Of a stretch of DNA of 64,000 nt, positions 1,068 to 56,845 are shown piece after piece. The stretch's first letter is position 1, and each line of letters opens with the position of its first letter. The translations under genes were made by a program, and so were the position numbers. The stretch spans positions 13,950,001 to 14,014,000 of the forward strand of contig OZ059896.1 in assembly GCA_964057225.1 (NCBI GenBank), written 5' to 3'. Source of the DNA: Auanema rhodensis. Taxonomy: Eukaryota > Animalia > Nematoda. The notes below the pieces were generated by a model. That model was not told the DNA's origin, did no database searches, and saw only the letters and a program-made list of their open reading frames with translations.

Positions 1068-1069
1068 AC

Positions 1070-31726: not shown

Positions 31727-32750
31727 GATACCAAGCAAGCCATTTGAACGAGTCCACATGGACGTAATGGGACCATTTCCCCCTTCAAAAAGAAACTGTA
31801 CCTACGTCATTACCATGCAAGACGCATTTACAAAATGGTCAACAACAATTGCTGTACCACAAATAACAACGGAAATCACAATTGATCGATTTCTAAGACA
31901 TTTCGTTTACATTTTTGGACCACCCCATCGCTTGATCACCGATAGAGGTTCAAACTTTGTATCTAAAAAGTTCGAAGAAATGTGTACTAAACTTGGAATC
32001 AAACATGAACCAACACTACCACACCAAAAGAACTCAAATGGACAAGTGGAAAGACTTCACCGAACCCTCGAAGAAGGATTAACCCACTACTTAAAAGAGG
32101 ACCTTAGTGACTGGGATACTGTATTACCAAAAATCACTTTTGCTATTAACAATATTCAGCACGCGACTACAGGGATTGCGCCATACATTGCATTATTCGG
32201 TAAAGAATGCAGAATGTCAATGGACGCTGAATTACCAGAAACGATCACCAAAATTCAAGAAATTTCTGAAGAATTACTCCAAAGAAGACCAGATATGGAC
32301 AAGAGAGACGAAATAATAAAGAACCGCATAGCTAAAAATCAAGAAAATGCGAAAAAGAAGAAAGATAGAACGCAAAGAGCACACCATAGAGACATTCAAC
32401 CGGGCGACATGGTGATGACGACTATAAAATCACACCAAATCGGCCAAAAGCTTCGGAAAAGCTATGATGGACCATGCGAAGTCATCAACGTAGAAGGATC
32501 AAAAGTTCAAATCAGAAATTCATCAGGAAAACTACAAGATATCCACAAAGATAACTTGAAAATCTTCTCTCCTGCTTCACAAAACATCTCTTACAACACT
32601 CGCGCAAGGTTTCGAGAAAGTCAAGCAGAAGAAGATAGCGACATCGAAATAATAGAAGTGATCAACAGGAACAACAAGGATAGCATAGATACAGAGCCAG
32701 AAGATGAAAATGAAGACGAAATATGGCTTCCGAGGAATGAAGAAGAATAA
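31668..32750 (+). CDS. Integrase catalytic core and C-terminus, displaced from the polyprotein by a frameshift
   Basis: HMDVMGP, ITDRGSNF and GQVERLH (D,D35E) plus a GPY/F-like YDGPC. This region is continuous with the HHCC finger in element 2; here there is an extra A in the A8 run at 31678..31685. Confidence 0.93.
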   Translation: MLKEKKDPHSMTVQPIGHFEIPSKPFERVHMDVMGPFPPSKRNCTYVITMQDAFTKWSTTIAVPQITTEITIDRFLRHFVYIFGPPHRLITDRGSNFVSKKFEEMCTKLGIKHEPTLPHQKNSNGQVERLHRTLEEGLTHYLKEDLSDWDTVLPKITFAINNIQHATTGIAPYIALFGKECRMSMDAELPETITKIQEISEELLQRRPDMDKRDEIIKNRIAKNQENAKKKKDRTQRAHHRDIQPGDMVMTTIKSHQIGQKLRKSYDGPCEVINVEGSKVQIRNSSGKLQDIHKDNLKIFSPASQNISYNTRARFRESQAEEDSDIEIIEVINRNNKDSIDTEPEDENEDEIWLPRNEEE

Positions 32751-32973
32751 CAACAAGATAATGCTACGTTATTTAAATTATTGTAACAAAATAACGATGA
32801 ATTAAAAAAAAAAAAAAAAAATTAATGCTAAATAACATTCAAAATAAAAATAGCATTTAATAGAGATTGAGAAAGGAAAAATAAGGCAAATTCTAAACGA
32901 GGAGATGTTATGACTAATGGTTCCAAGTTACCGTAATCCTATGCGGACTAGAGGACATTTTGACAACCATCCG

Positions 32974-33086
32974 AGCTCCATGTGCCTCTCCAAATAAGAT
33001 GAGATGAACACTGGTAGGCGTATCAACCACAATTTCATCTTAAGTGGTAGTCTCCATTAGTAATCAAGGATTCACTCTGGGAGACA
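32974..33086 (+). other. Conserved structured RNA element in the 3' UTR (homologue at 57157..57267, minus strand)
   Basis: A ~110-nt block is conserved between otherwise unalignable 3' UTRs, with nested stems and a compensatory change. Confidence 0.65.
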
Positions 33087-33444
33087 TATGGAGACACATT
33101 ATTAAATCATAATCTCGGTTCAATTTAGAAATGAGTACTTCTTGAGACCATTAGTCAAAATAATAACATATTCCCATTCATTACTAGCCCCTTTATTCTA
33201 CAATCTCTATTAGGAAATGCTTGAATATTAAGATAATTAATTTATGAAATTAATAATATTCTAATTCATCGTCCCTTCATATTATATTGAACCCTTCTTA
33301 TAAATTATTGTAATTTTGTTTGTATACTAACTAAAACTCTATCATACTATAGTTATTGTGAAGCTAAAACAATTGAACTCTAAAACTCAGTTACATATAA
33401 GCCCAAATTTTTGTTTAAAATATCGCGAGGTCGCGACAATCTTT

Positions 33445-33455
33445 GAAAAAGGGCA
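33445..33455 (+). promoter_or_regulatory. Polypurine tract of element 1
   Basis: GAAAAAGGG-CA immediately before the 3' LTR; identical in element 2. Confidence 0.85.
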
Positions 33456-33821
33456 CGTTCCATTCGGAGACTCTATATATGTAACTGCAGGGTTAGAGCC
33501 AGACCGACTAGAGGAATGAGGAATGGCACCGCCTTCCCTCATGCCCCTATTCGGGAGTTCGCCCCTTTGCAAGCCCATGGACGGTTTGCATCTAACTTAG
33601 TTAATCTTATATATTAGTCTTTGTCTTGTAAATGTAGTTTACTTTATCCTTGTGTTAATGTATTGTAATGATATTGTATTGTGTATAATAAACCTATATA
33701 TTTCCTTATCTTATGTAATCCTTATGCTCTGTTTCCATACCGCTACACTTATGGAATACTATACGCGTAGTTGAGCAGACTACAATGGTCTGTTCAATAT
33801 ACGTAGGAGCATAATGGAACG
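33456..33821 (+). repeat. 3' LTR of element 1
   Basis: Direct repeat of 24442..24807, followed by ATAG and resumption of the array spacer. Confidence 0.97.
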
Positions 33822-36179
33822 ATAGTCAAGGCGGAGTCTTTTGATCTAAATCGTCGGTTCCGTGGTGTAGCGGTTAGCACTCAGGACTTTGAATCCTGCG
33901 ACCCGAGTTCAAATCTCGGCGGAACCTACTTTTTCATTTTGATCAACTGGTCAATTTGTTTCTTCTTGAACTATTTTCTTGAAGAACATAGTCAAGGCGG
34001 AGTCTTTTGATCTAAATCGTCGGTTCCGCGGTGTAGCGGTTAGCACTCAGGACTTTGAATCCTGCGACCCGAGTTCAAATCTCGGCGGAACCTACTTTTT
34101 CATTTTGATCAACTGGTCAATTTGTTTCTTCTTGAACTATTTTCTTGAAGAACATAGTCAAGGCGGAGTCTTTTGATCTAAATCGTCGGTTCCGTGGTGT
34201 AGCGGTTAGCACTCAGGACTTTGAATCCTGCGACCCGAGTTCAAATCTCGGCGGAACCTACTTTTTCATTTTTATCAGTTGGTCAATTTGTTTCTTCTTG
34301 AACTATTTTCTTGAAGAACATTGTCAAGGCGGAGTCTTTTGATCTAAATCGTCGGTTCCGTGGTGTAGCGGTTAGCACTCAGGACTCTGAATCCTGCGAC
34401 CCGAGTTCAAATCTCGGCGGAACCTACTTTTTCATTTTGATCAACTGGTCAATTTGTTTCTTCTTGAACTATTTTCTTGAAGAACATAGTCAAGGCGGAG
34501 TCTTTTGATCTAAATCGTCGGTTCCGTGGTGTAGCGGTTAGCACTCAGGACTTTGAATCCTGCGACCCGAGTTCAAATCTCGGCGGAACCTACTTTTTCA
34601 TTTTGATCAACTGGTCAATTTGTTTCTTCTTGAACTATTTTCTTGAAGAACATAGTCAAGGCGGAGTCTTTTGATCTAAATCATCGGTTCCGTGGTGTAG
34701 CGGTTAGCACTCAGGACTCTGAATCCTGCGACCCGAGTTCAAATCTCGGCGGAACCTACTTTTTCATTTTGATCAACTGGTCAATTTGTTTCTTCTTGAA
34801 CTATTTTCTTGAAGAACATAGTCAAGGCGGAGTCTTTTGATCTAAATCGTCGGTTCCGTGGTGTAGCGGTTAGCACTCAGGACTCTGAATCCTGCGACCC
34901 GAGTTCAAATCTCGGCGGAACCTACTTTTTCATTTTGATCAACTGGTCAATTTGTTTCTTCTTGAACTATTTTCTTGAAGAACATAGTCAAGGCGGAGTC
35001 TTTTGATCTAAATCATCGGTTCCGTGGTGTAGCGGTTAGCACTCAGGACTCTGAATCCTGCGACCCGAGTTCAAATCTCGGCGGAACCTACTTTTTCATT
35101 TTGATCAACTGGTCAATTTGTTTCTTCTTGAACTATTTTCTTGAAGAACATAGTCAAGGCGGAGTCTTTTGATCTAAATCGTCGGTTCCGTGGTGTAGCG
35201 GTTAGCACTCAGGACTTTGAATCCTGCGACCCGAGTTCAAATCTCGGCGGAACCTACTTTTTCATTTTGATCAACTGGTCAATTTGTTTCTTCTTGAACT
35301 ATTTTCTTGAAGAACATAGTCAAGGCGGAGTCTTTTGATCTAAATCATCGGTTCCGTGGTGTAGCGGTTAGCACTCAGGACTTTGAATCCTGCGACCCGA
35401 GTTCAAATCTCGGCGGAACCTACTTTTTCATTTTGATCAACTAGTCAATTTGTTTCTTCTTAAACTATCTACTTGGAGAACATAGTCAAGGCGGAGTCTT
35501 TTGATCTAAATCGTCGGTTCCGTGGTGTAGAGGTTAGCACTCAGGACTTTGAATCCTGCGACCCGAGTTCAAATCTCGGCGGAACCTACTTTTTCATTTT
35601 GATCAACTGGTCAATTTGTTTCTTCTTGAACTATTTTCTTGAAGAACATAGTCAAGGCGGAGTCTTTTGATCTAAATCGTCGGTTCCGCGGTGTAGCGGT
35701 TAGCACTCAGGACTTTGAATCCTGCGACCCGAGTTCAAATCTCGGCGGAACCTACTTTTTCATTTTGATCAACTGGTCAATTTGTTTCTTCTTGAACTAT
35801 TTTCTTGAAGAACATAGTCAAGGCGGAGTCTTTTGATCTAAATCGTCGGTTCCGTGGTGTAGCGGTTAGCACTCAGGACTTTGAATCCTGCGACCCGAGT
35901 TCAAATCTCGGCGGAACCTACTTTTTCATTTTGATCAACTGGTCAATTTGTTTCTTCTTGAACTATTTTCTTGAAGAACATAGTCAAGGCGGAGTCTTTT
36001 GATCTAAATCGTCGGTTCCGTGGTGTAGCGGTTAGCACTCAGGACTTTGAATCCTGCGACCCGAGTTCAAATCTCGGCGGAACCTACTTTTTCATTTTGA
36101 TCAACTGGTCAATTTGTTTCTTCTTGAACTATTTTCTTGAAGAACATAGTCAAGGCGGAGTCTTTTGATCTAAATCGTC

Positions 36180-36251
36180 GGTTCCGTGGTGTAGCGGTTA
36201 GCACTCAGGACTCTAAATCCTGCGACCCGAATTCAAATCTCGGCGGAACCT
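36180..36251 (+). tRNA. tRNA-Gln-derived gene with CTA (amber) anticodon and G53A; possibly silent
   Basis: CAGGA-CT-CTA-AA-TCCTG (anticodon 36213..36215); T arm reads CCGAATTCAAAT instead of CCGAGTTCAAAT. Confidence 0.85.
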
Positions 36252-37839
36252 ACTTTTTCATTTTGATCAGTTGGTGAATTTGTTTCTTCTTGAACTATTT
36301 TCTTGAAGAACATAGTCAAGGCGGAGTCTTTTGATCTAAATCGTCGGTTCCGTGGTGTAGCGGTTAGCACTCAGGACTTTGAATCCTGCGACCCGAGTTC
36401 AAATCTCGGCGGAACCTACTTTTTCATTTTGATCAACTAGTCAATTTGTTTCTTCTTAAACTATCTACTTGAAGAACATAGTCAAGGCGGAGTCTTTTGA
36501 TCTAAATCGTCGGTTCCGTGGTGTAGCGGTTAGCACTCAGGACTCTGAATCCTGCGACCCGAGTTCAAATCTCGGCGGAACCTACTTTTTCATTTTTATC
36601 AGTTGGTCAATTTGTTTCTTCTTGAACTATTTTCTTGAAGAACATAGTCAAGGCGGAGTCTTTTGATCTAAATCGTCGGTTCCGTGGTGTAGCGGTTAGC
36701 ACTCAGGACTTTGAATCCTGCGACCCGAGTTCAAATCTCGGCGGAACCTACTTTTTCATTTTGATCAACTAGTCAATTTGTTTCTTCTTAAACTATCTAC
36801 TTGAAGAACATAGTCAAGGCGGAGTCTTTTGATCTAAATCGTCGGTTCCGTGGTGTAGCGGTTAGCACTCAGGACTTTGAATCCTGCGACCCGAGTTCAA
36901 ATCTCGGCGGAACCTACTTTTTCATTTTGATCAACTGGTCAATTTGTTTCTTCTTGAACTATTTTCTTGAAGAACATAGTCAAGGCGGAGTCTTTTGATC
37001 TAAATCGTCGGTTCCGTGGTGTAGCGGTTAGCACTCAGGACTTTGAATCCTGCGACCCGAGTTCAAATCTCGGCGGAACCTACTTTTTCATTTTGATCAA
37101 CTGGTCAATTTGTTTCTTCTTGAACTATTTTCTTGAAGAACATAGTCAAGGCGGAGTCTTTTGATCTAAATCGTCGGTTCCGTGGTGTAGCGGTTAGCAC
37201 TCAGGACTTTGAATCCTGCGACCCGAGTTCAAATCTCGGCGGAACCTACTTTTTCATTTTGATCAACTGGTCAATTTGTTTCTTCTTGAACTATTTTCTT
37301 GAAGAACATAGTCAAGGCGGAGTCTTTTGATCTAAATCGTCGGTTCCGCGGTGTAGCGGTTAGCACTCAGGACTTTGAATCCTGCGACCCGAGTTCAAAT
37401 CTCGGCGGAACCTACTTTTTCATTTTGATCAACTGGTCAATTTGTTTCTTCTTGAACTATTTTCTTGAAGAACATAGTCAAGGCGGAGTCTTTTGATCTA
37501 AATCGTCGGTTCCGTGGTGTAGCGGTTAGCACTCAGGACTTTGAATTCTGCGACCCGAGTTCAAATCTCGGCGGAACCTACTTTTTCATTTTGATCAACT
37601 GGTCAATTTGTTTCTTCTTGAACTATTTTCTTGAAGAACATAGTCAAGGCGGAGTCTTTTGATCTAAATCGTCGGTTCCGTGGTGTAGCGGTTAGCACTC
37701 AGGACTTTGAATCCTGCGACCCGAGTTCAAATCTCGGCGGAACCTACTTTTTCATTTTGATCAACTGGTCAATTTGTTTCTTCTTGAACTATTTTCTTGA
37801 AGAACATAGTCAAGGCGGAGTCTTTTGATCTAAATCGTC

Positions 37840-37911
37840 GGTTCCGTGGTGTAGCGGTTAGCACTCAGGACTCTAAATCCTGCGACCCGAATTCAAATCT
37901 CGGCGGAACCT
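37840..37911 (+). tRNA. CTA-anticodon / G53A copy 2
   Basis: Same two substitutions as the copy at 36180. Confidence 0.85.
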
Positions 37912-39001
37912 ACTTTTTCATTTTGATCAGTTGGTGAATTTGTTTCTTCTTGAACTATTTTCTTGAAGAACATAGTCAAGGCGGAGTCTTTTGATCTAAA
38001 TCGTCGGTTCCGTGGTGTAGCGGTTAGCACTCAGGACTTTGAATCCTGCGACCCGAGTTCAAATCTCGGCGGAACCTACTTTTTCATTTTGATCAACTAG
38101 TCAATTTGTTTCTTCTTAAACTATCTACTTGAAGAACATAGTCAAGGCGGAGTCTTTTGATCTAAATCGTCGGTTCCGTGGTGTAGCGGTTAGCACTCAG
38201 GACTCTGAATCCTGCGACCCGAGTTCAAATCTCGGCGGAACCTACTTTTTCATTTTTATCAGTTGGTGAATTTGTTTCTTCTTGAACTATTTTCTTGAAG
38301 AACATAGTCAAGGCGGAGTCTTTTGATCTAAATCGTCGGTTCCGTGGTGTAGCGGTTAGCACTCAGGACTTTGAATCCTGCGACCCGAGTTCAAATCTCG
38401 GCGGAACCTACTTTTTCATTTTGATCAACTAGTCAATTTGTTTCTTCTTAAACTATCTACTTGAAGAACATAGTCAAGGCGGAGTCTTTTGATCTAAATC
38501 GTCGGTTCCGTGGTGTAGCGGTTAGCACTCAGGACTCTGAATCCTGCGACCCGAGTTCAAATCTCGGCGGAACCTACTTTTTCATTTTTATCAGTTGGTG
38601 AATTTGTTTCTTCTTGAACTATTTTCTTGAAGAACATAGTCAAGGCGGAGTCTTTTGATCTAAATCGTCGGTTCCGTGGTGTAGCGGTTAGCACTCAGGA
38701 CTTTGAATCCTGCGACCCGAGTTCAAATCTCGGCGGAACCTACTTTTTCATTTTGATCAGTTGGTGAATTTGTTTCTTCTTGAACTATTTTCTTGAAGAA
38801 CATAGTCAAGGCGGAGTCTTTTGATATAAATCGTCGGTTCCGTGGTGTAGCGGTTAGCACTCAGGACTTTGAATCCTGCGACCCGAGTTCAAATCTCGGC
38901 GGAACCTACTTTTTCATTTTGATCAACTGGTCAATTTGTTTCTTCTTGAACTATTTTCTTGAAGAACATAGTCAAGGCGGAGTCTTTTGATCTAAATCGT
39001 C

Positions 39002-39073
39002 GGTTCCGTGGTGTAGCGGTTAGCACTCAGGACTCTAAATCCTGCGACCCGAATTCAAATCTCGGCGGAACCT
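39002..39073 (+). tRNA. CTA-anticodon / G53A copy 3
   Basis: Same two substitutions as the copy at 36180. Confidence 0.85.
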
Positions 39074-40449
39074 ACTTTTTCATTTTGATCAGTTGGTGAA
39101 TTTGTTTCTTCTTGAACTATTTTCTTGAAGAACATAGTCAAGGCGGAGTCTTTTGATCTAAATCGTCGGTTCCGTGGTGTAGCGGTTAGCACTCAGGACT
39201 TTGAATCCTGCGACCCGAGTTCAAATCTCGGCGGAACCTACTTTTTCATTTTGATCAACTAGTCAATTTGTTTCTTCTTAAACTATCTACTTGAAGAACA
39301 TAGTCAAGGCGGAGTCTTTTGATCTAAATCGTCGGTTCCGTGGTGTAGCGGTTAGCACTCAGGACTCTGAATCCTGCGACCCGAGTTCAAATCTCGGCGG
39401 AACCTACTTTTTCATTTTTATCAGTTGGTCAATTTGTTTCTTCTTGAACTATTTTCTTGAAGAACATAGTCAAGGCGGAGTCTTTTGATCTAAATCGTCG
39501 GTTCCGTGGTGTAGCGGTTAGCACTCAGGACTTTGAATCCTGCGACCCGAGTTCAAATCTCGGCGGAACCTACTTTTTCATTTTGATCAACTAGTCAATT
39601 TGTTTCTTCTTAAACTATCTACTTGAAGAACATAGTCAAGGCGGAGTCTTTTGATCTAAATCGTCGGTTCCGTGGTGTAGCGGTTAGCACTCAGGACTCT
39701 GAATCCTGCGACCCGAGTTCAAATCTCGGCGGAACCTACTTTTTCATTTTTATCAGTTGGTGAATTTGTTTCTTCTTGAACTATTTTCTTGAAGAACATA
39801 GTCAAGGCGGAGTCTTTTGATCTAAATCGTCGGTTCCGTGGTGTAGCGGTTAGCACTCAGGACTTTGAATCCTGCGACCCGAGTTCAAATCTCGGCGGAA
39901 CCTACTTTTTCATTTTGATCAACTAGTCAATTTGTTTCTTCTTAAACTATCTACTTGAAGAACATAGTCAAGGCGGAGTCTTTTGATATAAATCGTCGGT
40001 TCCGTGGTGTAGCGGTTAGCACTCAGGACTCTGAATCCTGCGACCCGAGTTCAAATCTCGGCGGAACCTACTTTTTCATTTTTATCAGTTGGTCAATTTG
40101 TTTCTTCTTGAACTATTTTCTTGAAGAACATAGTCAAGGTCGGTTCCGTGGTGTATCGTCGGTTCCGTGGTGTAGCGGTTAGCACTCAGGACTTTGAATC
40201 CTGCGACCCGAGTTCAAATCTCGGCGGAACCTACTTTTTCATTTTGATCAACTGGTCAATTTGTTTCTTCTTGAACTATTTTCTTGAAGAACATAGTCAA
40301 GGCGGAGTCTTTTGATCTAAATCGTCGGTTCCGTGGTGTAGCGGTTAGCACTCAGGACTTTGAATCCTGCGACCCGAGTTCAAATCTCGGCGGAACCTAC
40401 TTTTTCATTTTGATCAACTAGTCAATTTGTTTCTTCTTAAACTATCTAC

Positions 40450-43400
40450 TTGAAGAACATAGTCAAGGCGGAGTCTTTTGATCTAAATCGTCGGTTCCGT
40501 GGTGTAGCGGTTAGCACTCAGGACTCTGAATCCTGCGACCCGAGTTCAAATCTCGGCGGAACCTACTTTTTCATTTTTATCAGTTGGTCAATTTGTTTCT
40601 TCTTGAACTATTTTCTTGAAGAACATAGTCAAGGTCGGTTCCGTGGTGTATCGTCGGTTCCGTGGTGTAGCGGTTAGCACTCAGGACTTTGAATCCTGCG
40701 ACCCGAGTTCAAATCTCGGCGGAACCTACTTTTTCATTTTTATCAGTTGGTCAATTTGTTTCTTCTTGAACTATTTTCTTGAAGAACATAGTCAAGGTCG
40801 GTTCCGTGGTGTATCGTCGGTTCCGTGGTGTAGCGGTTAGCACTCAGGACTTTGAATCCTGCGACCCGAGTTCAAATCTCGGCGGAACCTACTTTTTCAT
40901 TTTGATCAACTGGTCAATTTGTTTCTTCTTGAACTATTTTCTTGAAGAACATAGTCAAGGCGGAGTCTTTTGATCTAAATCGTCGGTTCCGTGGTGTAGC
41001 GGTTAGCACTCAGGACTTTGAATCCTGCGACCCGAGTTCAAATCTCGGCGGAACCTACTTTTTCATTTTGATCAACTAGTCAATTTGTTTCTTCTTAAAC
41101 TATCTACTTGAAGAACATAGTCAAGGCGGAGTCTTTTGATCTAAATCGTCGGTTCCGTGGTGTAGCGGTTAGCACTCAGGACTCTGAATCCTGCGACCTG
41201 AGTTCAAATCTCGGCGGAACCTACTTTTTCATTTTGATCAACTAGTCAATTTGTTTCTTCTTGAACTATTTTCTTGAAGAACATAGTCAAGGCGGAGTCT
41301 TTTGATCTAAATCGTCGGTTCCGTGGTGTAGCGGTTAGCACTCAGGACTCTGAATCCTGCGACCCGAGTTCAAATCTCGGCGGAACCTACTTTTTCATTT
41401 TTATCAGTTGGTCAATTTGTTTCTTCTTGAACTATTTTCTTGAAGAACATAGTCAAGGTCGGTTCCGTGGTGTATCGTCGGTTCCGTGGTGTAGCGGTTA
41501 GCACTCAGGACTCTGAATCCTGCGACCTGAGTTCAAATCTCGGCGGAACCTACTTTTTCATTTTGATCAACTAGTCAATTTGTTTCTTCTTAAACTATCT
41601 ACTTGAAGAACATAGTCAAGGCGGAGTCTTTTGATCTAAATCGTCGGTTCCGTGGTGTAGCGGTTAGCACTCAGGACTCTGAATCCTGCGACCCGAGTTC
41701 AAATCTCGGCGGAACCTACTTTTTCATTTTTATCAGTTGGTCAATTTGTTTCTTCTTGAACTATTTTCTTGAAGAACATAGTCAAGGCGGAGTCTTTTGA
41801 TCTAAATCGTCGGTTCCGTGGTGTAGCGGTTAGCACTCAGGACTTTGAATCCTGCGACCCGAGTTCAAATCTCGGCGGAACCTACTTTTTCATTTTGATC
41901 AACTAGTCAATTTGTTTCTTCTTAAACTATCTACTTGAAGAACATAGTCAAGGCGGAGTCTTTTGATCTAAATCGTCGGTTCCGTGGTGTAGCGGTTAGC
42001 ACTCAGGACTCTGAATCCTGCGACCCGAGTTCAAATCTCGGCGGAACCTACTTTTTCATTTTGATCAACTGGTCAATTTGTTTCTTCTTGAACTATTTTC
42101 TTGAAGAACATAGTCAAGGCGGAGTCTTTTGATCTAAATCGTCGGTTCCGTGGTGTAGCGGTTAGCACTCAGGACTTTGAATCCTGCGACCCGAGTTCAA
42201 ATCTCGGCGGAACCTACTTTTTCATTTTGATCAACTAGTCAATTTGTTTCTTCTTAAACTATCTACTTGAAGAACATAGTCAAGGCGGAGTCTTTTGATA
42301 TAAATCGTCGGTTCCGTGGTGTAGCGGTTAGCACTCAGGACTCTGAATCCTGCGACCCGAGTTCAAATCTCGGCGGAACCTACTTTTTCATTTTTATCAG
42401 TTGGTCAATTTGTTTCTTCTTGAACTTTCTTCTTGAAGAACATAAACAAGCGTTCCGTTATGCTCGCATGTCGATCCTATAGACCAATAAAGCCTACAAG
42501 ATGAGTGTGATAGTATTCCAGATGTAGCGGTGCATAAAGAGCATAATGGATAAACATAAGACTCGAGAAAGAAAAGTTTATTATGTCTACATGATTACAC
42601 AAATCTCGGCGGAACCTACTTTTTCATTTTTATCAGTTGGTCAATTTGTTTCTTCTTGAACTATTTTCTTGAAGAACATAGTCAAGGTCGGTTCCGTGGT
42701 GTATCGTCGGTTCCGTGGTGTAGCGGTTAGCACTCAGGACTTTGAATCCTGCGACCCGAGTTCAAATCTCGGCGGAACCTACTTTTTCATTTTGATCAAC
42801 TGGTCAATTTGTTTCTTCTTGAACTATTTTCTTGAAGAACATAGTCAAGGCGGAGTCTTTTGATCTAAATCGTCGGTTCCGTGGTGTAGCGGTTAGCACT
42901 CAGGACTTTGAATCCTGCGACCCGAGTTCAAATCTCGGCGGAACCTACTTTTTCATTTTGATCAGTTGGTGAATTTGTTTCTTCTTAAACTATCTACTTG
43001 AAGAACATAGTCAAGGCGGAGTCTTTTGATCTAAATCGTCGGTTCCGTGGTGTAGCGGTTAGCACTCAGGACTCTGAATCCTGCGACCCGAGTTCAAATC
43101 TCGGCGGAACCTACTTTTTCATTTTTATCAGTTGGTCAATTTGTTTCTTCTTGAACTATTTTCTTGAAGAACATTGTCAAGGCGGAGTCTTTTGATCTAA
43201 ATCGTCGGTTCCGTGGTGTAGCGGTTAGCACTCAGGACTTTGAATCCTGCGACCCGAGTTCAAATCTCGGCGGAACCTACTTTTTCATTTTGATCAACTA
43301 GTCAATTTGTTTCTTCTTAAACTATCTACTTGAAGAACATAGTCAAGGCGGAGTCTTTTGATCTAAATCGTCGGTTCCGTGGTGTAGCGGTTAGCACTCA

Positions 43401-46030
43401 GGACTTTGAATCCTGCGACCCGAGTTCAAATCTCGGCGGAACCTACTTTTTCATTTTGATCAGTTGGTGAATTTGTTTCTTCTTGAACTATTTTCTTGAA
43501 GAACATAGTCAAGGCGGAGTCTTTTGATCTAAATCGTCGGTTCCGTGGTGTAGCGGTTAGCACTCAGGACTTTGAATCCTGCGACCCGAGTTCAAATCTC
43601 GGCGGAACCTACTTTTTCATTTTGATCAACTAGTCAATTTGTTTCTTCTTAAACTATCTACTTGAAGAACATAGTCAAGGCGGAGTCTTTTGATCTAAAT
43701 CGTCGGTTCCGTGGTGTAGCGGTTAGCACTCAGGACTCTGAATCCTGCGACCCGAGTTCAAATCTCGGCGGAACCTACTTTTTCATTTTTATCAGTTGGT
43801 CAATTTGTTTCTTCTTGAACTATTTTCTTGAAGAACATAGTCAAGGTCGGTTCCGTGGTGTATCGTCGGTTCCGTGGTGTAGCGGTTAGCACTCAGGACT
43901 TTGAATCCTGCGACCCGAGTTCAAATCTCGGCGGAACCTACTTTTTCATTTTTATCAGTTGGTCAATTTGTTTCTTCTTGAACTATTTTCTTGAAGAACA
44001 TAGTCAAGGTCGGTTCCGTGGTGTATCGTCGGTTCCGTGGTGTAGCGGTTAGCACTCAGGACTTTGAATCCTGCGACCCGAGTTCAAATCTCGGCGGAAC
44101 CTACTTTTTCATTTTGATCAACTGGTCAATTTGTTTCTTCTTGAACTATTTTCTTGAAGAACATAGTCAAGGCGGAGTCTTTTGATCTAAATCGTCGGTT
44201 CCGTGGTGTAGCGGTTAGCACTCAGGACTTTGAATCCTGCGACCCGAGTTCAAATCTCGGCGGAACCTACTTTTTCATTTTGATCAACTAGTCAATTTGT
44301 TTCTTCTTAAACTATCTACTTGAAGAACATAGTCAAGGCGGAGTCTTTTGATCTAAATCGTCGGTTCCGTGGTGTAGCGGTTAGCACTCAGGACTCTGAA
44401 TCCTGCGACCTGAGTTCAAATCTCGGCGGAACCTACTTTTTCATTTTGATCAACTAGTCAATTTGTTTCTTCTTGAACTATTTTCTTGAAGAACATAGTC
44501 AAGGCGGAGTCTTTTGATCTAAATCGTCGGTTCCGTGGTGTAGCGGTTAGCACTCAGGACTCTGAATCCTGCGACCCGAGTTCAAATCTCGGCGGAACCT
44601 ACTTTTTCATTTTTATCAGTTGGTCAATTTGTTTCTTCTTGAACTATTTTCTTGAAGAACATAGTCAAGGTCGGTTCCGTGGTGTATCGTCGGTTCCGTG
44701 GTGTAGCGGTTAGCACTCAGGACTCTGAATCCTGCGACCTGAGTTCAAATCTCGGCGGAACCTACTTTTTCATTTTGATCAACTAGTCAATTTGTTTCTT
44801 CTTAAACTATCTACTTGAAGAACATAGTCAAGGCGGAGTCTTTTGATCTAAATCGTCGGTTCCGTGGTGTAGCGGTTAGCACTCAGGACTCTGAATCCTG
44901 CGACCCGAGTTCAAATCTCGGCGGAACCTACTTTTTCATTTTTATCAGTTGGTCAATTTGTTTCTTCTTGAACTATTTTCTTGAAGAACATAGTCAAGGC
45001 GGAGTCTTTTGATCTAAATCGTCGGTTCCGTGGTGTAGCGGTTAGCACTCAGGACTTTGAATCCTGCGACCCGAGTTCAAATCTCGGCGGAACCTACTTT
45101 TTCATTTTGATCAACTAGTCAATTTGTTTCTTCTTAAACTATCTACTTGAAGAACATAGTCAAGGCGGAGTCTTTTGATCTAAATCGTCGGTTCCGTGGT
45201 GTAGCGGTTAGCACTCAGGACTCTGAATCCTGCGACCCGAGTTCAAATCTCGGCGGAACCTACTTTTTCATTTTGATCAACTGGTCAATTTGTTTCTTCT
45301 TGAACTATTTTCTTGAAGAACATAGTCAAGGCGGAGTCTTTTGATCTAAATCGTCGGTTCCGTGGTGTAGCGGTTAGCACTCAGGACTTTGAATCCTGCG
45401 ACCCGAGTTCAAATCTCGGCGGAACCTACTTTTTCATTTTGATCAACTAGTCAATTTGTTTCTTCTTAAACTATCTACTTGAAGAACATAGTCAAGGCGG
45501 AGTCTTTTGATATAAATCGTCGGTTCCGTGGTGTAGCGGTTAGCACTCAGGACTCTGAATCCTGCGACCCGAGTTCAAATCTCGGCGGAACCTACTTTTT
45601 CATTTTTATCAGTTGGTCAATTTGTTTCTTCTTGAACTTTCTTCTTGAAGAACATAAACAAGCGTTCCGTTATGCTCGCATGTCGATCCTATAGACCAAT
45701 AAAGCCTACAAGATGAGTGTGATAGTATTCCAGATGTAGCGGTGCATAAAGAGCATAATGGATAAACATAAGACTCGAGAAAGAAAAGTTTATTATGTCT
45801 ACATGATTACACAAATCTCGGCGGAACCTACTTTTTCATTTTTATCAGTTGGTCAATTTGTTTCTTCTTGAACTATTTTCTTGAAGAACATAGTCAAGGT
45901 CGGTTCCGTGGTGTATCGTCGGTTCCGTGGTGTAGCGGTTAGCACTCAGGACTTTGAATCCTGCGACCCGAGTTCAAATCTCGGCGGAACCTACTTTTTC
46001 ATTTTGATCAGTTGGTGAATTTGTTTCTTC
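40450..46030 (+). repeat. Higher-order duplication with 3212-bp period inside the array
   Basis: The same order of variant units recurs at +3212 (40450/43662, 41274/44486, 42451/45663). Boundaries are approximate. Confidence 0.8.
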
Positions 46031-48145
46031 TTAAACTATCTACTTGAAGAACATAGTCAAGGCGGAGTCTTTTGATCTAAATCGTCGGTTCCGTGGTGTA
46101 GCGGTTAGCACTTAGGACTCTGAATCCTGCGACCCGAGTTCAAATCTCGGCGGAACCTACTTTTTCATTTTTATCAGTTGGTCAATTTGTTTCTTCTTGA
46201 ACTATTTTCTTGAAGAACATAGTCAAGGCGGAGTCTTTTGATCTAAATCGTCGGTTCCGTGGTGTAGCGGTTAGCACTCAGGACTTTGAATCCTGCGACC
46301 CGAGTTCAAATCTCGGCGGAACCTACTTTTTCATTTTGATCAACTAGTCAATTTGTTTCTTCTTAAACTATCTACTTGAAGAACATAGTCAAGGCGGAGT
46401 CTTTTGATCTAAATCGTCGGTTCCGTGGTGTAGCGGTTAGCACTCAGGACTTTGAATCCTGCGACCCGAGTTCAAATCTCGGCGGAACCTACTTTTTCAT
46501 TTTGATCAGTTGGTGAATTTGTTTCTTCTTGAACTATTTTCTTGAAGAACATAGTCAAGGCGGAGTCTTTTGATCTAAATCGTCGGTTCCGTGGTGTAGC
46601 GGTTAGCACTCAGGACTTTGAATCCTGCGACCCGAGTTCAAATCTCGGCGGAACCTACTTTTTCATTTTGATCAACTAGTCAATTTGTTTCTTCTTGAAC
46701 TATTTTCTTGAAGAACATAGTCAAGGCGGAGTCTTTTGATCTAAATCGTCGGTTCCGTGGTGTAGCGGTTAGCACTCAGGACTCTGAATCCTGCGACCCG
46801 AGATCAAATCTCGGCGGAACCTACTTTTTCATTTTTATCAGTTGGTGAATTTGTTTCTTCTTGAACTATTTTCTTGAAGAACATAGTCAAGGCGGAGTCT
46901 TTTGATCTAAATCGTCGGTTCCGTGGTGTAGCGGTTAGCACTCAGGACTTTGAATCCTGCGACCCGAGTTCAAATCTCGGCGGAACCTACTTTTTCATTT
47001 TGATCAACTGGTCAATTTGTTTCTTCTTGAACTATATTCTTGAAGAACATAGTCAAGGCGGAGTCTTTTGATCTAAATCGTCGGTTCCGTGGTGTAGCGG
47101 TTAGCACTCAGGACTTTGAATCCTGCGACCCGAGTTCAAATCTCGGCGGAACCTACTTTTTCATTTTGATCAACTAGTCAATTTGTTTCTTCTTAAACTA
47201 TCTACTTGAAGAACATAGTCAAGGCGGAGTCTTTTGATATAAATCGTCGGTTCCGTGGTGTAGCGGTTAGCACTCAGGACTTTGAATCCTGCGACCCGAG
47301 TTCAAATCTCGGCGGAACCTACTTTTTCATTTTTATCAGTTGGTCAATTTGTTTCTTCTTGAACTTTCTTCTTGAAGAACATAAACAAGCGTTCCGTTAT
47401 GCTCGCACGTCGATCCTATAGACCAATAAAGCCTACAAGATGAGTGTGATAGTATTCCAGATGTAGCGGTGCATAAAGAGCATAATGGATAAACATAAGA
47501 CTCGAGAAAGAAAAGTTTATTATGTCTACATGATTACACAAATCTCGGCGGAACCTACTTTTTCATTTTTATCAGTTGGTCAATTTGTTTCTTCTTGAAC
47601 TATTTTCTTGAAGAACATAGTCAAGGTCGGTTCCGTGGTGTATCGTCGGTTCCGTGGTGTAGCGGTTAGCACTCAGGACTTTGAATCCTGCGACCCGAGT
47701 TCAAATCTCGGCGGAACCTACTTTTTCATTTTGATCAACTGGTCAATTTGTTTCTTCTTGAACTATTTTCTTGAAGAACATAGTCAAGGCGGAGTCTTTT
47801 GATCTAAATCGTCGGTTCCGTGGTGTAGCGGTTAGCACTCAGGACTTTGAATCCTGCGACCCGAGTTCAAATCTCGGCGGAACCTACTTTTTCATTTTGA
47901 TCAACTGGTCAATTTGTTTCTTCTTGAACTATTTTCTTGAAGAACATAGTCAAGGCGGAGTCTTTTGATCTAAATCGTCGGTTCCGTGGTGTAGCGGTTA
48001 GCACTCAGGACTTTGAATCCTGCGACCCGAGTTCAAATCTCGGCGGAACCTACTTTTTCATTTTGATCAACTAGTCAATTTGTTTCTTCTTGAACTATTT
48101 TCTTGAAGAACATAGTCAAGGCGGAGTCTTTTGATCTAAATCGTC

Positions 48146-48217
48146 GGTTCCGTGGTGTAGCGGTTAGCACTCAGGACTCTAAATCCTGCGACCCGAATTC
48201 AAATCTCGGCGGAACCT
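48146..48217 (+). tRNA. CTA-anticodon / G53A copy 4
   Basis: Same two substitutions as the copy at 36180. Confidence 0.85.
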
Positions 48218-51200
48218 ACTTTTTCATTTTGATCAGTTGGTGAATTTGTTTCTTCTTGAACTATTTTCTTGAAGAACATAGTCAAGGCGGAGTCTTTTGA
48301 TCTAAATCGTCGGTTCCGTGGTGTAGCGGTTAGCACTCAGGACTTTGAATCCTGCGACCCGAGTTCAAATCTCGGCGGAACCTACTTTTTCATTTTGATC
48401 AACTAGTCAATTTGTTTCTTCTTAAACTATCTACTTGAAGAACATAGTCAAGGCGGAGTCTTTTGATCTAAATCGTCGGTTCCGTGGTGTAGCGGTTAGC
48501 ACTCAGGACTCTGAATCCTGCGACCCGAGTTCAAATCTCGGCGGAACCTACTTTTTCATTTTTATCAGTTGGTCAATTTGTTTCTTCTTGAACTATTTTC
48601 TTGAAGAACATAGTCAAGGCGGAGTCTTTTGATCTAAATCGTCGGTTCCGTGGTGTAGCGGTTAGCACTCAGGACTTTGAATCCTGCGACCCGAGTTCAA
48701 ATCTCGGCGGAACCTACTTTTTCATTTTGATCAACTAGTCAATTTGTTTCTTCTTAAACTATCTACTTGAAGAACATAGTCAAGGCGGAGTCTTTTGATC
48801 TAAATCGTCGGTTCCGTGGTGTAGCGGTTAGCACTCAGGACTCTGAATCGTGCGACCCGAGTTCAAATCTCGGCGGAACCTACTTTTTCATTTTTATCAG
48901 TTGGTGAATTTGTTTCTTCTTGAACTATTTTCTTGAAGAACATAGTCAAGAAGGAGTCTTTTGATCTAAATCGTCGGTTCCGTGGTGTAGCGGTTAGCAC
49001 TCAGGACTTTGAATCCTGCGACCCGAGTTCAAATCTCGGCGGAACCTACTTTTTCATTTTGATCAGTTGGTGAATTTGTTTCTTCTTGAACTATTTTCTT
49101 GAAGAACATAGTCAAGGCGGAGTCTTTTGATCTAAATCGTCGGTTCCGTGGGGTAGCGGTTAGCACTCAGGACTTTGAATCCTGCGACCCGAGTTCAAAT
49201 CTCGGCGGAACCTACTTTTTCATTTTGATCAACTAGTCAATTTGTTTCTTCTTAAACTATCTACTTGAAGAACATAGTCAAGGCGGAGTCTTTTGATCTA
49301 AATCGTCGGTTCCGTGGTGTAGCGGTTAGCACTCAGGACTCTGAATCCTGCGACCCGAGTTCAAATCTCGGCGGAACCTACTTTTTCATTTTTATCAGTT
49401 GGTCAATTTGTTTCTTCTTGAACTATTTTCTTGAAGAACATAGTCAAGGCGGAGTCTTTTGATCTAAATCGTCGGTTCCGTGGTGTAGCGGTTAGCACTC
49501 AGGACTTTGAATCCTGCGACCCGAGTTCAAATCTCGGCGGAACCTACTTTTTCATTTTGATCAACTAGTCAATTTGTTTCTTCTTAAACTATCTACTTGA
49601 AGAACATAGTCAAGGCGGAGTCTTTTGATATAAATCGTCGGTTCCGTGGTGTAGCGGTTAGCACTCAGGACTTTGAATCCTGCGACCCGAGTTCAAATCT
49701 CGGCGGAACCTACTTTTTCATTTTTATCAGTTGGTCAATTTGTTTCTTCTTGAACTTTCTTCTTGAAGAACATAAACAAGCGTTCCGTTATGCTCGCACG
49801 TCGATCCTATAGACCAATAAAGCCTACAAGATGAGTGTGATAGTATTCCAGATGTAGCGGTGCATAAAGAGCATAATGGATAAACATAAGACTCGAGAAA
49901 GAAAGGTTTATTATGTCTACATGATTACAATAAGTTATAAAAGTCTGCATAAAGATATAAAGTGAAAGAGAGCTAAGAAAGGAAGACAAACCATCCATAG
50001 TCATTCCATAAGGCAAAGCTGAAGTCTGTGTTCCATATGAAGGGCGTGTCGTCCTCTCTCAGCCTCATGTTGTCTGATTCTAACCCGCCTGCTACGTATT
50101 GATTTCCAAATGGAACGCAAGGCGGAGTCTTTTGATCTAAATAGTCGGTTCCGTGGTGTAGCGGTTAGCACTCAGGACTTTGAATCCTGCGACCCGAGTT
50201 CAAATCTCGGCGGAACCTACTTTTTCATTTAGATCAACTGGTCAATTTGTTTCTTCTTGAACTATTTTCTTGAAGAACATAGTCAAGGCGGAGTCTTTTG
50301 ATCTAAATCGTCGGTTCCGTGGTGTAGCGGTTAGCACTCAGGACTCTGAATCCTGCGACCCGAGTTCAAATCTCGGCGGAACCTACTTTTTCATTTTTAT
50401 CAGTTGGTCAATTTGTTTCTTCTTGAACTATTTTCTTGAAGAACATAGTCAAGGCGGAGTCTTTTGATCTAAATCGTCGGTTCCGTGGTGTAGCGGTTAG
50501 CACTCAGGACTCTGAATCCTGCGACCCGAGTTCAAATCTCGGCGGAACCTACTTTTTCATTTTTATCAGTTGGTCAATTTGTTTCTTCTTGAACTATTTT
50601 CTTGAAGAACATAGTCAAGGTCGGTTCCGTGGTGTATCGTCGGTTCCGTGGTGTAGCGGTTAGCACTCAGGACTTTGAATCCTGCGACCCGAGTTCAAAT
50701 CTCGGCGGAACCTACTTTTTCATTTTTATCAGTTGGTCAATTTGTTTCTTCTTGAACTTTCTTCTTGAAGAACATAAACAAGCGTTCCGTTATGCTCGCA
50801 CGTCGATCCTATAGACCAATAAAGCCTACAAGATGAGTGTGATAGTATTCCAGATGTAGCGGTGCATAAAGAGCATAATGGATAAACATAAGACTCGAGA
50901 AAGAAAGGTTTATTATGTCTACATGATTACAATAAGTTATAAAAGTCTGCATAAAGATATAAAGTGAAAGAGAGCTAAGAAAGGAAGACAAACCATCCAT
51001 AGTCATTCCATAAGGCAAAGCTGAAGTCTGTGTTCCATATGAAGGGCGTGTCGTCCTCTCTCAGCCTCATGTTGTCTGATTCTAACCCGCCTGCTACGTA
51101 TTGATTTCCAAATGGAACGCAAGGCGGAGTCTTTTGATCTAAATAGTCGGTTCCGTGGTGTAGCGGTTAGCACTCAGGACTTTGAATCCTGCGACCCGAG

Positions 51201-52141
51201 TTCAAATCTCGGCGGAACCTACTTTTTCATTTAGATCAACTGGTCAATTTGTTTCTTCTTGAACTATTTTCTTGAAGAACATAGTCAAGGCGGAGTCTTT
51301 TGATCTAAATCGTCGGTTCCGTGGTGTAGCGGTTAGCACTCAGGACTCTGAATCCTGCGACCCGAGTTCAAATCTCGGCGGAACCTACTTTTTCATTTTT
51401 ATCAGTTGGTCAATTTGTTTCTTCTTGAACTATTTTCTTGAAGAACATAGTCAAGGCGGAGTCTTTTGATCTAAATCGTCGGTTCCGTGGTGTAGCGGTT
51501 AGCACTCAGGACTCTGAATCCTGCGACCCGAGTTCAAATCTCGGCGGAACCTACTTTTTCATTTTTATCAGTTGGTCAATTTGTTTCTTCTTGAACTATT
51601 TTCTTGAAGAACATAGTCAAGGTCGGTTCCGTGGTGTATCGTCGGTTCCGTGGTGTAGCGGTTAGCACTCAGGACTTTGAATCCTGCGACCCGAGTTCAA
51701 ATCTCGGCGGAACCTACTTTTTCATTTTTATCAGTTGGTCAATTTGTTTCTTCTTGAACTTTCTTCTTGAAGAACATAGTCAAGGCGGAGTTTTTAGAGA
51801 TAAATCGTCCGTTCCGTGGTGTAGCGGTTAGCACTCAGGACTTTGAATCCTGCGACCCGAGTTCAAATCTCGGCGGAACCTACTTTTTCATTTTGATCAA
51901 CTGGTCAATTTGTTTCTTCTTGAACTATTTTCTTGAAGAACATAGTCAAGGCGGAGTCTTTTGATCTAAATCGTCGGTTCCGTGGTGTAGCGGTTAGCAC
52001 TCAGGACTTTGAATCCTGCGACCCGAGTTCAAATCTCGGCGGAACCTACTTTTTCATTTTGATCAACTGGTCAATTTGTTTCTTCTTGAACTATTTTCTT
52101 GAAGAACATAGTCAAGGCGGCGTCTTTTGATCTAAATCGTC

Positions 52142-52213
52142 GGTTCCGTGGTGTAGCGGTTAGCACTCAGGACTCTAAATCCTGCGACCCGAATTCAAAT
52201 CTCGGCGGAACCT
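52142..52213 (+). tRNA. CTA-anticodon / G53A copy 5
   Basis: Same two substitutions as the copy at 36180. Confidence 0.85.
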
Positions 52214-52971
52214 ACTTTTTCATTTTGATCAGTTGGTGAATTTGTTTCTTCTTGAACTATTTTCTTGAAGAACATAGTCAAGGCGGAGTCTTTTGATCTA
52301 AATCGTCGGTTCCGTGGTGTAGCGGTTAGCACTCAGGACTTTGAATCCTGCGACCCGAGTTCAAATCTCGGCGGAACCTACTTTTTCATTTTGATCAACT
52401 AGTCAATTTGTTTCTTCTTAAACTATCTACTTGAAGAACATAGTCAAGGCGGAGTCTTTTGATCTAAATCGTCGGTTCCGTGGTGTAGCGGTTAGCACTC
52501 AGGACTCTGAATCCTGCGACCCGAGTTCAAATCTCGGCGGAACCTACTTTTTCATTTTTATCAGTTGGTCAATTTGTTTCTTCTTGAACTATTTTCTTGA
52601 AGAACATAGTCAAGGCGGAGTCTTTTGATCTAAATCGTCGGTTCCGTGGTGTAGCGGTTAGCACTCAGGACTTTGAATCCTGCGACCCGAGTTCAAATCT
52701 CGGCGGAACCTACTTTTTCATTTTGATCAACTAGTCAATTTGTTTCTTCTTAAACTATCTACTTGAAGAACATAGTCAAGGCGGAGTCTTTTGATCTAAA
52801 TCGTCGGTTCCGTGGTGTAGCGGTTAGCACTCAGGACTCTGAATCCTGCGACCCGAGTTCAAATCTCGGCGGAACCTACTTTTTCATTTTTATCAGTTGG
52901 TGAATTTGTTTCTTCTTGAACTATTTTCTTGAAGAACATAGTCAAGGCGGAGTCTTTTGATCTAAATCGTC

Positions 52972-53055
52972 GGTTCCGTGGTGTAGCGGTTAGCATAGCG
53001 GTTAGCACTCAGGACTTTGAATCCTGCGACCCGAGTTCAAATTTCGGCGGAACCT
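52972..53055 (+). pseudogene. tRNA-Gln(TTG) copy with 12-bp D-arm tandem duplication
   Basis: TAGCGGTTAGCA is duplicated, and there is also a TTCGG change in the T stem. Confidence 0.75.
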
Positions 53056-56000
53056 ACTTTTTCATTTTGATCAACTAGTCAATTTGTTTCTTCTTAAACT
53101 ATCTACTTGAAGAACATAGTCAAGGCGGAGTCTTTTGATATAAATCGTCGGTTCCGTGGTGTAGCGGTTAGCACTCAGGACTCTGAATCCTGCGACCCGA
53201 GTTCAAATCTCGGCGGAACCTACTTTTTCATTTTTATCAGTTGGTCAATTTGTTTCTTCTTGAACTTTCTTCTTGAAGAACATAAACAAGCGTTCCGTTA
53301 TGCTCGCATGTCGATCCTATAGACCAATAAAGCCTACAAGCTGAGTGTGATAGTATTCCAGATGTAGCGGTGCATAAAGAGCATAATGGATAAACATAAG
53401 ACTCGAGAAAGAAAAGTTTATTATGTCTACATGATTACACAAATCTCGGCGGAACCTACTTTTTCATTTTTATCAGTTGGTCAATTTGTTTCTTCTTGAA
53501 CTATTTTCTTGAAGAACATAGTCAAGGTCGGTTCCGTGGTGTATCGTCGGTTCCGTGGTGTAGCGGTTAGCACTCAGGACTTTGAATCCTGCGACCCGAG
53601 TTCAAATCTCGGCGGAACCTACTTTTTCATTTTGATCAACTGGTCAATTTGTTTCTTCTTGAACTATTTTCTTGAAGAACATAGTCAAGGCGGAGTCTTT
53701 TGATCTAAATCGTCGGTTCCGTGGTGTAGCGGTTAGCACTCAGGACTTTGAATCCTGCGACCCGAGTTCAAATCTCGGCGGAACCTACTTTTTCATTTTG
53801 ATCAACTAGTCAATTTGTTTCTTCTTAAACTATCTACTTGAAGAACATAGTCAAGGCGGAGTCTTTTGATCTAAATCGTCGGTTCCGTGGTGTAGCGGTT
53901 AGCACTCAGGACTCTGAATCCTGCGACCCGAGTTCAAATCTCGGCGGAACCTACTTTTTCATTTTGATCAACTAGTCAATTTGTTTCTTCTTGAACTATT
54001 TTCTTGAAGAACATAGTCAAGGCGGAGTCTTTTGATCTAAATCGTCGGTTCCGTGGTGTAGCGGTTAGCACTCAGGACTCTGAATCCTGCGACCCGAGTT
54101 CAAATCTCGGCGGAACCTACTTTTTCATTTTTATCAGTTGGTCAATTTGTTTCTTCTTGAACTATTTTCTTGAAGAACATAGTCAAGGTCGGTTCCGTGG
54201 TGTATCGTCGGTTCCGTGGTGTAGCGGTTAGCACTCAGGACTTTGAATCCTGCGACCCGAGTTCAAATCTCGGCGGAACCTACTTTTTCATTTTTATCAG
54301 TTGGTCAATTTGTTTCTTCTTGAACTATTTTCTTGAAGAACATAGTCAAGGCGGAGTCTTTTGATCTAAATCGTCGGTTCCGTGGTGTAGCGGTTAGCAC
54401 TCAGGACTTTGAATCCTGCGACCCGAGTTCAAATCTCGGCGGAACCTACTTTTTCATTTTGATCAACTGGTCAATTTGTTTCTTCTTGAACTATTTTCTT
54501 GAAGAACATAGTCAAGGCGGAGTCTTTTGATCTAAATCGTCGGTTCCGTGGTGTAGCGGTTAGCACTCAGGACTCTGAATCCTGCGACCCGAGTTCAAAT
54601 CTCGGCGGAACCTACTTTTTCATTTTTATCAGTTGGTCAATTTGTTTCTTCTTGAACTATTTTCTTGAAGAACATAGTCAAGGCGGAGTCTTTTGATCTA
54701 AATCGTCGGTTCCGTGGTGTAGCGGTTTGCACTCAGGACTTTGAATCCTGCGACCCGAGTTCAAATCTCGGCGGAACCTACTTTTTCATTTTGATCAACT
54801 AGTCAATTTGTTTCTTCTTAAACTATCTACTTGAAGAACATAGTCAAGACGGAGTCTTTTGATCTAAATCGTCGGTTCCGTGGTGTAGCGGTTAGCACTC
54901 AGGACTCTGAATCGTGCGACCCGAGTTCAAATCTCGGCGGAACCTACTTTTTCATTTTTATCAGTTGGTGAATTTGTTTCTTCTTGAACTATTTTCTTGA
55001 AGAACATAGTCAAGGAGGAGTCTTTTGATCTAAATCGTCGGTTCCGTGGTGTAGCGGTTAGCACTCAGGACTTTGAATCCTGCGACCCGAGTTCAAATCT
55101 CGGCGGAACCTACTTTTTCATTTTGATCAGTTGGTGAATTTGTTTCTTCTTGAACTATTTTCTTGAAGAACATAGTCAAGGCGGAGTCTTTTGATCTAAA
55201 TCGTCGGTTCCGTGGTGTAGTGGTTAGCACTCAGGACTTTGAATCCTGCGACCCGAGTTCAAATCTCGGCGGAACCTACTTTTTCATTTTGATCAACTAG
55301 TCAATTTGTTTCTTCTTAAACTATCTACTTGAAGAACATAGTCAAGGCGGAGTCTTTTGATCTAAATCGTCGGTTCCGTGGTGTAGCGGTTAGCACTCAG
55401 GACTCTGAATCCTGCGACCCGAGTTCAAATCTCGGCGGAACCTACTTTTTCATTTTTATCAGTTGGTGAATTTGTTTCTTCTTGAACTATTTTCTTGAAG
55501 AACATAGTCAAGGCGGAGTCTTTTGATCTAAATCGTCGGTTCCGTGGTGTAGCGGTTAGCACTCAGGACTTTGAATCCTGCGACCCGAGTTCAAATCTCG
55601 GCGGAACCTACTTTTTCATTTTGATCAACTGGTCAATTTGTTTCTTCTTGAACTATATTCTTGAAGAACATAGTCAAGGCGGAGTCTTTTGATCTAAATC
55701 GTCGGTTCCGTGGTGTAGCGGTTAGCACTCAGGACTTTGAATCCTGCGACCCGAGTTCAAATCTCGGCGGAACCTACTTTTTCATTTTGATCAACTAGTC
55801 AATTTGTTTCTTCTTAAACTATCTACTTGAAGAACATAGTCAAGGCGGAGTCTTTTGATATAAATCGTCGGTTCCGTGGTGTAGCGGTTAGCACTCAGGA
55901 CTTTGAATCCTGCGACCCGAGTTCAAATCTCGGCGGAACCTACTTTTTCATTTTTATCAGTTGGTCAATTTGTTTCTTCTTGAACTTTCTTCTTGAAGAA

Positions 56001-56434
56001 CATAAACAAGCGTTCCGTTATGCTCGCACGTCGATCCTATAGACCAATAAAGCCTACAAGATGAGTGTGATAGTATTCCAGATGTAGCGGTGCATAAAGA
56101 GCATAATGGATAAACATAAGACTCGAGAAAGAAAAGTTTATTATGTCTACATGATTACACAAATCTCGGCGGAACCTACTTTTTCATTTTTATCAGTTGG
56201 TCAATTTGTTTCTTCTTGAACTATTTTCTTGAAGAACATAGTCAAGGTCGGTTCCGTGGTGTATCGTCGGTTCCGTGGTGTAGCGGTTAGCACTCAGGAC
56301 TTTGAATCCTGCGACCCGAGTTCAAATCTCGGCGGAACCTACTTTTTCATTTTGATCAACTGGTCAATTTGTTTCTTCTTGAACTATTTTCTTGAAGAAC
56401 ATAGTCAAGGCGGAGTCTTTTGATCTAAATCGTC

Positions 56435-56834: not shown

Positions 56835-56845
56835 TGCCCTTTTTC
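56835..56845 (-). promoter_or_regulatory. Polypurine tract of element 2
   Basis: TGCCCTTTTTC is GAAAAAGGGCA on the minus strand. Confidence 0.85.

Follow-up and report, generated by a model that had tools for sequence, protein, structure and literature searches.

The five transfer RNA (tRNA) genes with a CTA anticodon found in the 64-kb window analysed here (the whole stretch of 64,000 nucleotides, positions 13,950,001 to 14,014,000 of contig OZ059896.1, with coordinates below counted from its first letter) are probably decayed copies of tRNA-Gln, that is, inactive or nearly inactive pseudogenes multiplied as passengers of block duplications within a very large tandem array of tRNA-Gln genes. 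Each copy carries, in addition to the anticodon change, a second G-to-A change at position 53, and all five descend from a single unit whose wild-type paralogue is present in the same window. What is seen is most likely the ordinary decay of one array unit, with little import for the decoding of stop codons.

The anticodon CTA was assigned by ARAGORN to exactly 5 of the ~240 tRNA-Gln genes, as follows.

36180..36251, + strand: CTA/A53 tRNA-Gln-derived copy 1 (ARAGORN, sequence comparison and pattern search)
37840..37911, + strand: CTA/A53 copy 2, identical, 10 units downstream of copy 1
39002..39073, + strand: CTA/A53 copy 3, identical, 7 units downstream of copy 2
48146..48217, + strand: CTA/A53 copy 4, identical
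52142..52213, + strand: CTA/A53 copy 5, identical

All 72 nt are identical among the five copies, which differ from the CTG form of the array only by G36A and G53A. With CTA, one base away from CTG, a tRNA body otherwise cognate for Gln has an anticodon that matches a stop codon. The second change lies at linear position 52, the last base of the 5' strand of the T stem (CCGAG to CCGAA), with the standard position 53 assigned from the 4-nt variable loop and the D-loop layout of the array tRNA-Gln. Exact-pattern searches recovered GGACTYTAAATCCTG and ACCCGAATTCAAATC five times each, in the same five genes, and within the 64-kb window they returned no CTA copy with an intact G53, no A53 combined with CTG or TTG, and no TTA anticodon. 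The initial annotation, which had listed five CTA anticodons that always occur with G53A and neither change alone, thus agrees with ARAGORN and the pattern searches on both counts, as no G36A-only or G53A-only copy was found in the window. The tRNA-Pyl label given by ARAGORN was rejected, since it reflects the anticodon only and the body is that of the array tRNA-Gln bar two bases. The G53A change also creates a GAATTC (EcoRI) site at 36229-36234 and at the four homologous sites, which is unique to the five CTA copies and offers a simple physical marker for counting them.

Most of the window is taken up by the head-to-tail tRNA-Gln array, in which ARAGORN predicted 239 tRNA genes, all on the + strand, and a BLAST census counted 240 full or nearly full tRNA-Gln copies together with a few fragments. 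The density is thereby at least 240 tRNA-Gln genes within 56 kb. The unit has a period of 166 bp, made up of a 72-nt gene and a 94-nt spacer; the spacer starts with ACTTTTTC, whose five-T run fits an RNA polymerase III (Pol III) terminator. The array is present in two parts.

323..24377, + strand: array part 1, TTG and CTG isoacceptors, 166-bp period
33856..56469, + strand: array part 2, holding all five CTA copies and ending in a tRNA copy that a retroelement interrupts after nt 35

The consensus TTG form accounts for 135 copies and the CTG form for 58, and 47 copies are altered at one or more other positions of the gene body. TTG occurs alone in the first 12 kb of the array and is mixed with CTG thereafter, and higher-order repeats of 7, 10 and ~19 units are visible. 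For comparison, whole Caenorhabditis genomes contain 570–774 dispersed tRNA genes, with at most 36–60 per anticodon (PMC13010820), and no published description of such a tRNA-Gln array in nematodes was found in the literature searched.

When six-unit blocks (996 bp) around the five CTA copies were compared in register, 0–4 mismatches were found between blocks, and the stretch of good matches varies with the pair of CTA copies, from 8 to more than 20 units. Nested block duplications are evident from the intervals between the copies (10 units, 7 units and larger) and from the pattern of anticodons in the surrounding units. A paralogous block without the two changes lies in the first part of the array.

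35516..36511, + strand: six-unit block around copy 1, with the same block round each of the five copies
19160..20155, + strand: wild-type paralogue block, with a normal CTG tRNA at 19824-19895, the same downstream spacer, and T8C at 19326

These two blocks differ at 5 positions in 996 bp, two of them being G36A and G53A in the homologous unit, and CTG units with the identical downstream spacer start at 16338, 16836, 19824 and 22314. Three units upstream, the paralogue and the CTA blocks furthermore have an older T8C variant in common (at 19326 in the former, 35682 and 37342 upstream of CTA copies 1 and 2). The five near-identical blocks and the wild-type paralogue together indicate that one double-mutant unit was copied four times, and both hits arose in one CTG unit, in the interval between the older duplication and the four recent duplications. 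The descent of all five copies from one event, which the initial annotation had considered probable, is thus confirmed, and the copies share with pseudogenes the derivation from a functional paralogue by point mutation (block 19160-20155). As there is a single ancestral haplotype, the constant coupling of the two changes has an n of 1 and carries no weight as a repeated association; the array provides a clean case of how tandem copy number makes one mutational event look like many.

Long near-identical higher-order repeats are difficult to assemble, and a mis-assembled 166-bp array in which one or two real copies were inflated to five, or in which a consensus error occurred, could in principle produce the same picture. 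The five blocks, however, differ at 1–4 private positions and have different outer flanks, and the same sequence context was read as wild type ~230 times, so that we regard an assembly artefact as very unlikely.

The expected consequences of G53A were considered at the level of promoter and structure. G53 is a contact of TFIIIC tauB in the B box and figures in a list of universally conserved tRNA positions (bioRxiv 10.1101/2025.06.09.658696); its description in the initial annotation as a conserved B-box base therefore holds, with the addition that it is also a T-stem base. The break of the 53–61 pair was likewise recovered, as an A53–C61 mismatch that leaves a predicted T stem of 4 bp and raises the minimum free energy from -26.0 to -22.4 kcal/mol (a cost of 3.6). 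Against the Rfam tRNA model, the CTA/A53 sequence scores 60.2 bits and its CTG parent 65.8 bits (a drop of 5.6). When the yeast suppressor SUP4oc was screened to saturation, G53–C61 stood out among the stem pairs in that even pair-preserving replacements were non-functional, and only 8 of 140 non-canonical stem variants retained more than half of the activity (PMC4117946). By analogy, the CTA/A53 gene would be poorly transcribed and its tRNA product unstable or non-functional. The copies have lost a universal nucleotide (G53), as pseudogenes do, and with the G53–C61 pair they have lost the intact cloverleaf of a functional suppressor tRNA. Their score, unlike that of a low-scoring pseudogene, exceeds the Rfam gathering score of 29 by a wide margin, and the two changes leave the A box, the remainder of the B box and the T5 terminator untouched.

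In the scenario that we favour, one CTG-type unit of the array gained two G-to-A changes, of which G53A removes the conserved B-box guanine and breaks the universal G53–C61 pair and G36A converts the anticodon to CUA. The double-mutant unit would then have been carried passively in four duplications of blocks of at least ~8 units, resulting in five identical copies that are likely untranscribed or poorly transcribed, structurally defective and without a role. The simplest order would be G53A first, giving a dead copy, followed by a harmless anticodon hit; alternatively, both changes may have come about in one mutational event.

The coupling of G36A and G53A needs no special explanation. With the paralogue comparison as background (5 differences per 996 bp), once one hit has fallen in a gene, those 72 nt receive another with a probability of 1-(924/996)^4 = 0.26. 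Body changes occur in 47 of the 240 copies (20%), and 3 of the 26 variant-body haplotypes across the array have several hits. G-to-A makes up 4 of the 28 body variants, over ~21 G sites, and the rough expectation for G36A to occur somewhere in ~240 copies is 0.1–0.2, and higher in a longer array. Universal or promoter bases have also been hit in copies with normal anticodons (T8C in five copies, C56A in four and T54A in one), and other multiple mutants are found, as listed here by start position.

15674, 19326, 34022, 35682, 37342: T8C copies (universal U8, A box), normal anticodons
323, 2176, 4859, 10723: C56A copies (universal C56, B box), normal anticodons
12785, 13449: triple mutant
20322, 22812: G51C+A69C double mutant

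The maximum copy number of any body variant in the array is five, and the CTA unit ranks joint first among the variant-body units and eighth among all 66 unit haplotypes. The T8C and C56A lineages were likewise amplified by block duplication.

These figures bear on the masking idea put forward in the initial annotation, taken here in its strong form: an active tRNA-Gln(CUA) would be toxic, and selection would have let only a haplotype with a crippled promoter survive and multiply. Genomic amber suppressors of Caenorhabditis elegans do come at a dose-dependent cost, with sterility of sup-7 at 15 °C and lethality or sterility on ectopic or multicopy expression (PMC4999229), and because of this toxicity five active copies would probably be selected against. 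The sole stop-anticodon lineage in the window moreover has a disabling second hit, where only 2 of the other 24 variant lineages are multi-hit, and the constraint on tRNA bodies described below suggests that the array matters to the cell. Nonetheless, we consider such masking unlikely: a single evolutionary event underlies the pattern, a gene already hit would be hit again with a probability of ~0.26, hits on B-box or universal bases without a suppressor anticodon reach the same copy number, and if G53A came first, selection on a suppressor is unnecessary. The masking hypothesis mostly overlaps with that of decayed passengers, from which it differs only in claiming causation.

Some points weigh against simple decay. 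The single-mutant intermediate is absent from the 64 kb and the order of the hits is not fixed by the sequence; with the same paralogue background, the probability that the second hit falls on one of the ~12 universally conserved body positions of the same gene is only ~0.05, and a modest component of non-random coupling may therefore remain. Furthermore, a CTA/A53 gene that still scores 60 bits and has its A box, the rest of its B box and the T5 terminator could have residual activity.

Whether the rest of the array is or was functional was assessed from the distribution of variants. Setting the wobble position 34 aside, none of the 71 body sites has a variant in more than five copies, compared with 14 of the 94 spacer sites (Fisher p=3e-4); body variants occur at lower copy number than spacer variants (Mann–Whitney p=0.001), and unit haplotypes with a variant body are rarer than those with a wild-type body (p=0.004). 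The lack of common body variants, set against the many in the spacers, implies a limited spread of damaged copies. In 193 of the 240 copies the promoter boxes and the terminator are retained, with both legitimate isoacceptors represented. The gene bodies have probably been constrained, with the array functional at least until its recent expansions. An expressed array, as implied in the initial annotation, is thus supported in part: the site counts argue for function now or recently, whereas the constraint may be a past one only. Transcription-associated mutagenesis, for which an excess of rare variants in tRNA gene bodies is reportedly expected, was not relied on, as the excess observed (28 of 71 body sites and 18 of 94 spacer sites, p=0.005) is reduced to a trend when G/C and A/T sites are analysed apart (p=0.08 and 0.27).

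The same data speak to the view that the whole array is an untranscribed tRNA-derived satellite, in which mutations are neutral and spread by drift and unequal crossing-over. Such a satellite would account for the body changes in 20% of copies, for the truncated units and the retroelement insertions (one of them inside a tRNA), and for a copy number far beyond the 570–774 dispersed tRNA genes of whole Caenorhabditis genomes (PMC13010820). It would not be expected to show common variants at 14 of 94 spacer sites and none of 71 body sites (p=3e-4), nor a lower copy number of variant-body haplotypes (p=0.004), and it is for these reasons quite improbable; the retention of isoacceptors, promoter boxes and terminator in 193 of 240 copies also argues against it, but could be explained by past rather than present constraint.

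A CUG-to-CUA change in a tRNA-Gln body is the canonical route to reading UAG as Gln, as in E. coli supE, the yeast tRNA-Gln amber suppressor and the ciliate tRNA-Gln(CUA). These functional examples keep G53–C61, and ciliates have reassigned UAG. The initial annotation had also raised the possibility of deliberately weak suppressors, understood here as five copies that provide a low and tolerated level of UAG-to-Gln readthrough used by the organism. In that case G53A would be an attenuator making a natural suppressor compatible with viability, within an expressed giant array. The anticodon-loop context CUCUAAA would suit an amber suppressor, the terminator and the A box are intact, and the five copies have been kept without further change. 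The proposal is, however, without support. The identity of the copies reflects very recent duplication and not conservation, the lesion in G53–C61 is of a kind that abolishes suppressor function in yeast, and the large open reading frames (ORFs) of the nearby retroelements have TGA or TAA as their stop and do not depend on UAG readthrough. In addition, neither CTA copies (with either base at position 53) nor any array-type tRNA-Gln had a match in the metagenome, prokaryote-genome and viral contig collections scanned. Natural suppression by these copies is accordingly judged extremely unlikely. Nothing in the window points to a reassignment of UAG either, since the long retroelement ORFs remain open when read with the standard stops, and they terminate at TGA or TAA.

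The array is interrupted by two related retroelements, the first of which, with long terminal repeats (LTRs) at both ends, splits it.

24442..33821, + strand: LTR retroelement 1, 9.4 kb, inserted in an array spacer
56470..64000, - strand: retroelement 2, inside a tRNA-Gln copy at nt 35/36 (56469/56470), running to the window end

The 366-bp LTRs of element 1 are 100% identical, which points to a very recent insertion, and the element is flanked by a 4-bp ATAG target duplication (24438-24441/33822-33825), ~30 nt upstream of a tRNA. Its reading frame changes within the integrase region, near 31668-31726, and element 2 encodes an uninterrupted ORF of 2168 aa at 57476-63982. The LTRs of the two elements are 85% identical. 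Both are of the Ty3/gypsy type and encode a herpesvirus gB/class III fusion-glycoprotein (ENV) domain followed by PR, RT, RNase H and IN in the same reading frame. This GAG-ENV-POL layout is known from errantivirus-like elements of nematodes (PMC13524379). The best relatives of the polyproteins were from rhabditids (Auanema 61%, Heterorhabditis 58% and Caenorhabditis ~56% identity in the RT-IN region), and judging by these mobile-element proteins a rhabditid nematode is the most likely host.

Spacer inserts of 341 bp (e.g. 626-974) give rise to fifteen 507-bp units, having been co-amplified to 15 copies; they have a CAAG duplication, located 4–5 bp from the site of element 1, and CGTTCC...GGAACG termini. 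Their interpretation as solo LTRs of element 1 was rejected, as only the ~15-nt termini and the 4-bp duplication length agree, with no internal blastn match. All retroelement-type insertions of the window lie in the tRNA array, which could be the result of Pol III-directed integration or merely of a tolerated landing site, and the repeated insertion of envelope-bearing LTR elements into a tRNA array is of more general interest. The array also contains incomplete tRNA copies, as follows.

14898-14915, 42600-42617, 45812-45829, 47539-47556, 53440-53457, 56160-56177: 18-nt truncated units
52996-53055: tRNA copy without nt 1–12
11396-11419: 24-nt 5' tRNA fragment

The truncated units consist of the final 18 nt of the tRNA only and are the source of the 399/402-bp spacings. 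The deletions were propagated along with the blocks that contain them.

The features described here were compared to known systems. The amber suppressors sup-5, sup-7 and relatives of C. elegans (tRNA-Trp, CCA to CUA) are, like the CTA copies, nuclear tRNA genes of a nematode in which one base change leads to the reading of UAG, and they have a dose-dependent fitness cost (PMC4999229). In contrast to the present copies, they are tRNA-Trp genes with intact bodies and proven activity, and were selected in the laboratory; the copies described here are tRNA-Gln genes with a broken G53–C61 pair and are probably inactive. Closer counterparts are the stop-anticodon or isotype-switched copies of eukaryotic genomes, such as the 'Sup' and pseudogene calls of tRNAscan-SE and the anticodon-changing variants that are reportedly frequent in natural Caenorhabditis tRNA genes (PMC13010820). 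These also combine a single-base anticodon change with the loss of a conserved body nucleotide and are rare within their family, consistent with a high mutation input and purifying selection. The stop-reading CTA copies thus belong to a known kind, that of anticodon-variant copies in multicopy tRNA families, with the difference that the Caenorhabditis genes are dispersed, whereas here the variant has reached five copies through block duplication in a homogeneous 166-bp array.

An array of at least 240 tRNA-Gln genes, with constrained gene bodies and variable spacers, is of wider interest in itself when set against the dispersed genes of Caenorhabditis. Large homogeneous tRNA arrays have been described from Entamoeba, zebrafish, frog and Arabidopsis (PMC2888827, PMC10701932), and the present array resembles them in its head-to-tail short units with a tRNA gene, in unequal exchange and in the presence of variant and pseudogene copies; it differs from them in its single isotype (Gln), its size of at least 240 copies, its period of 166 bp and its occurrence in what is probably a rhabditid nematode.

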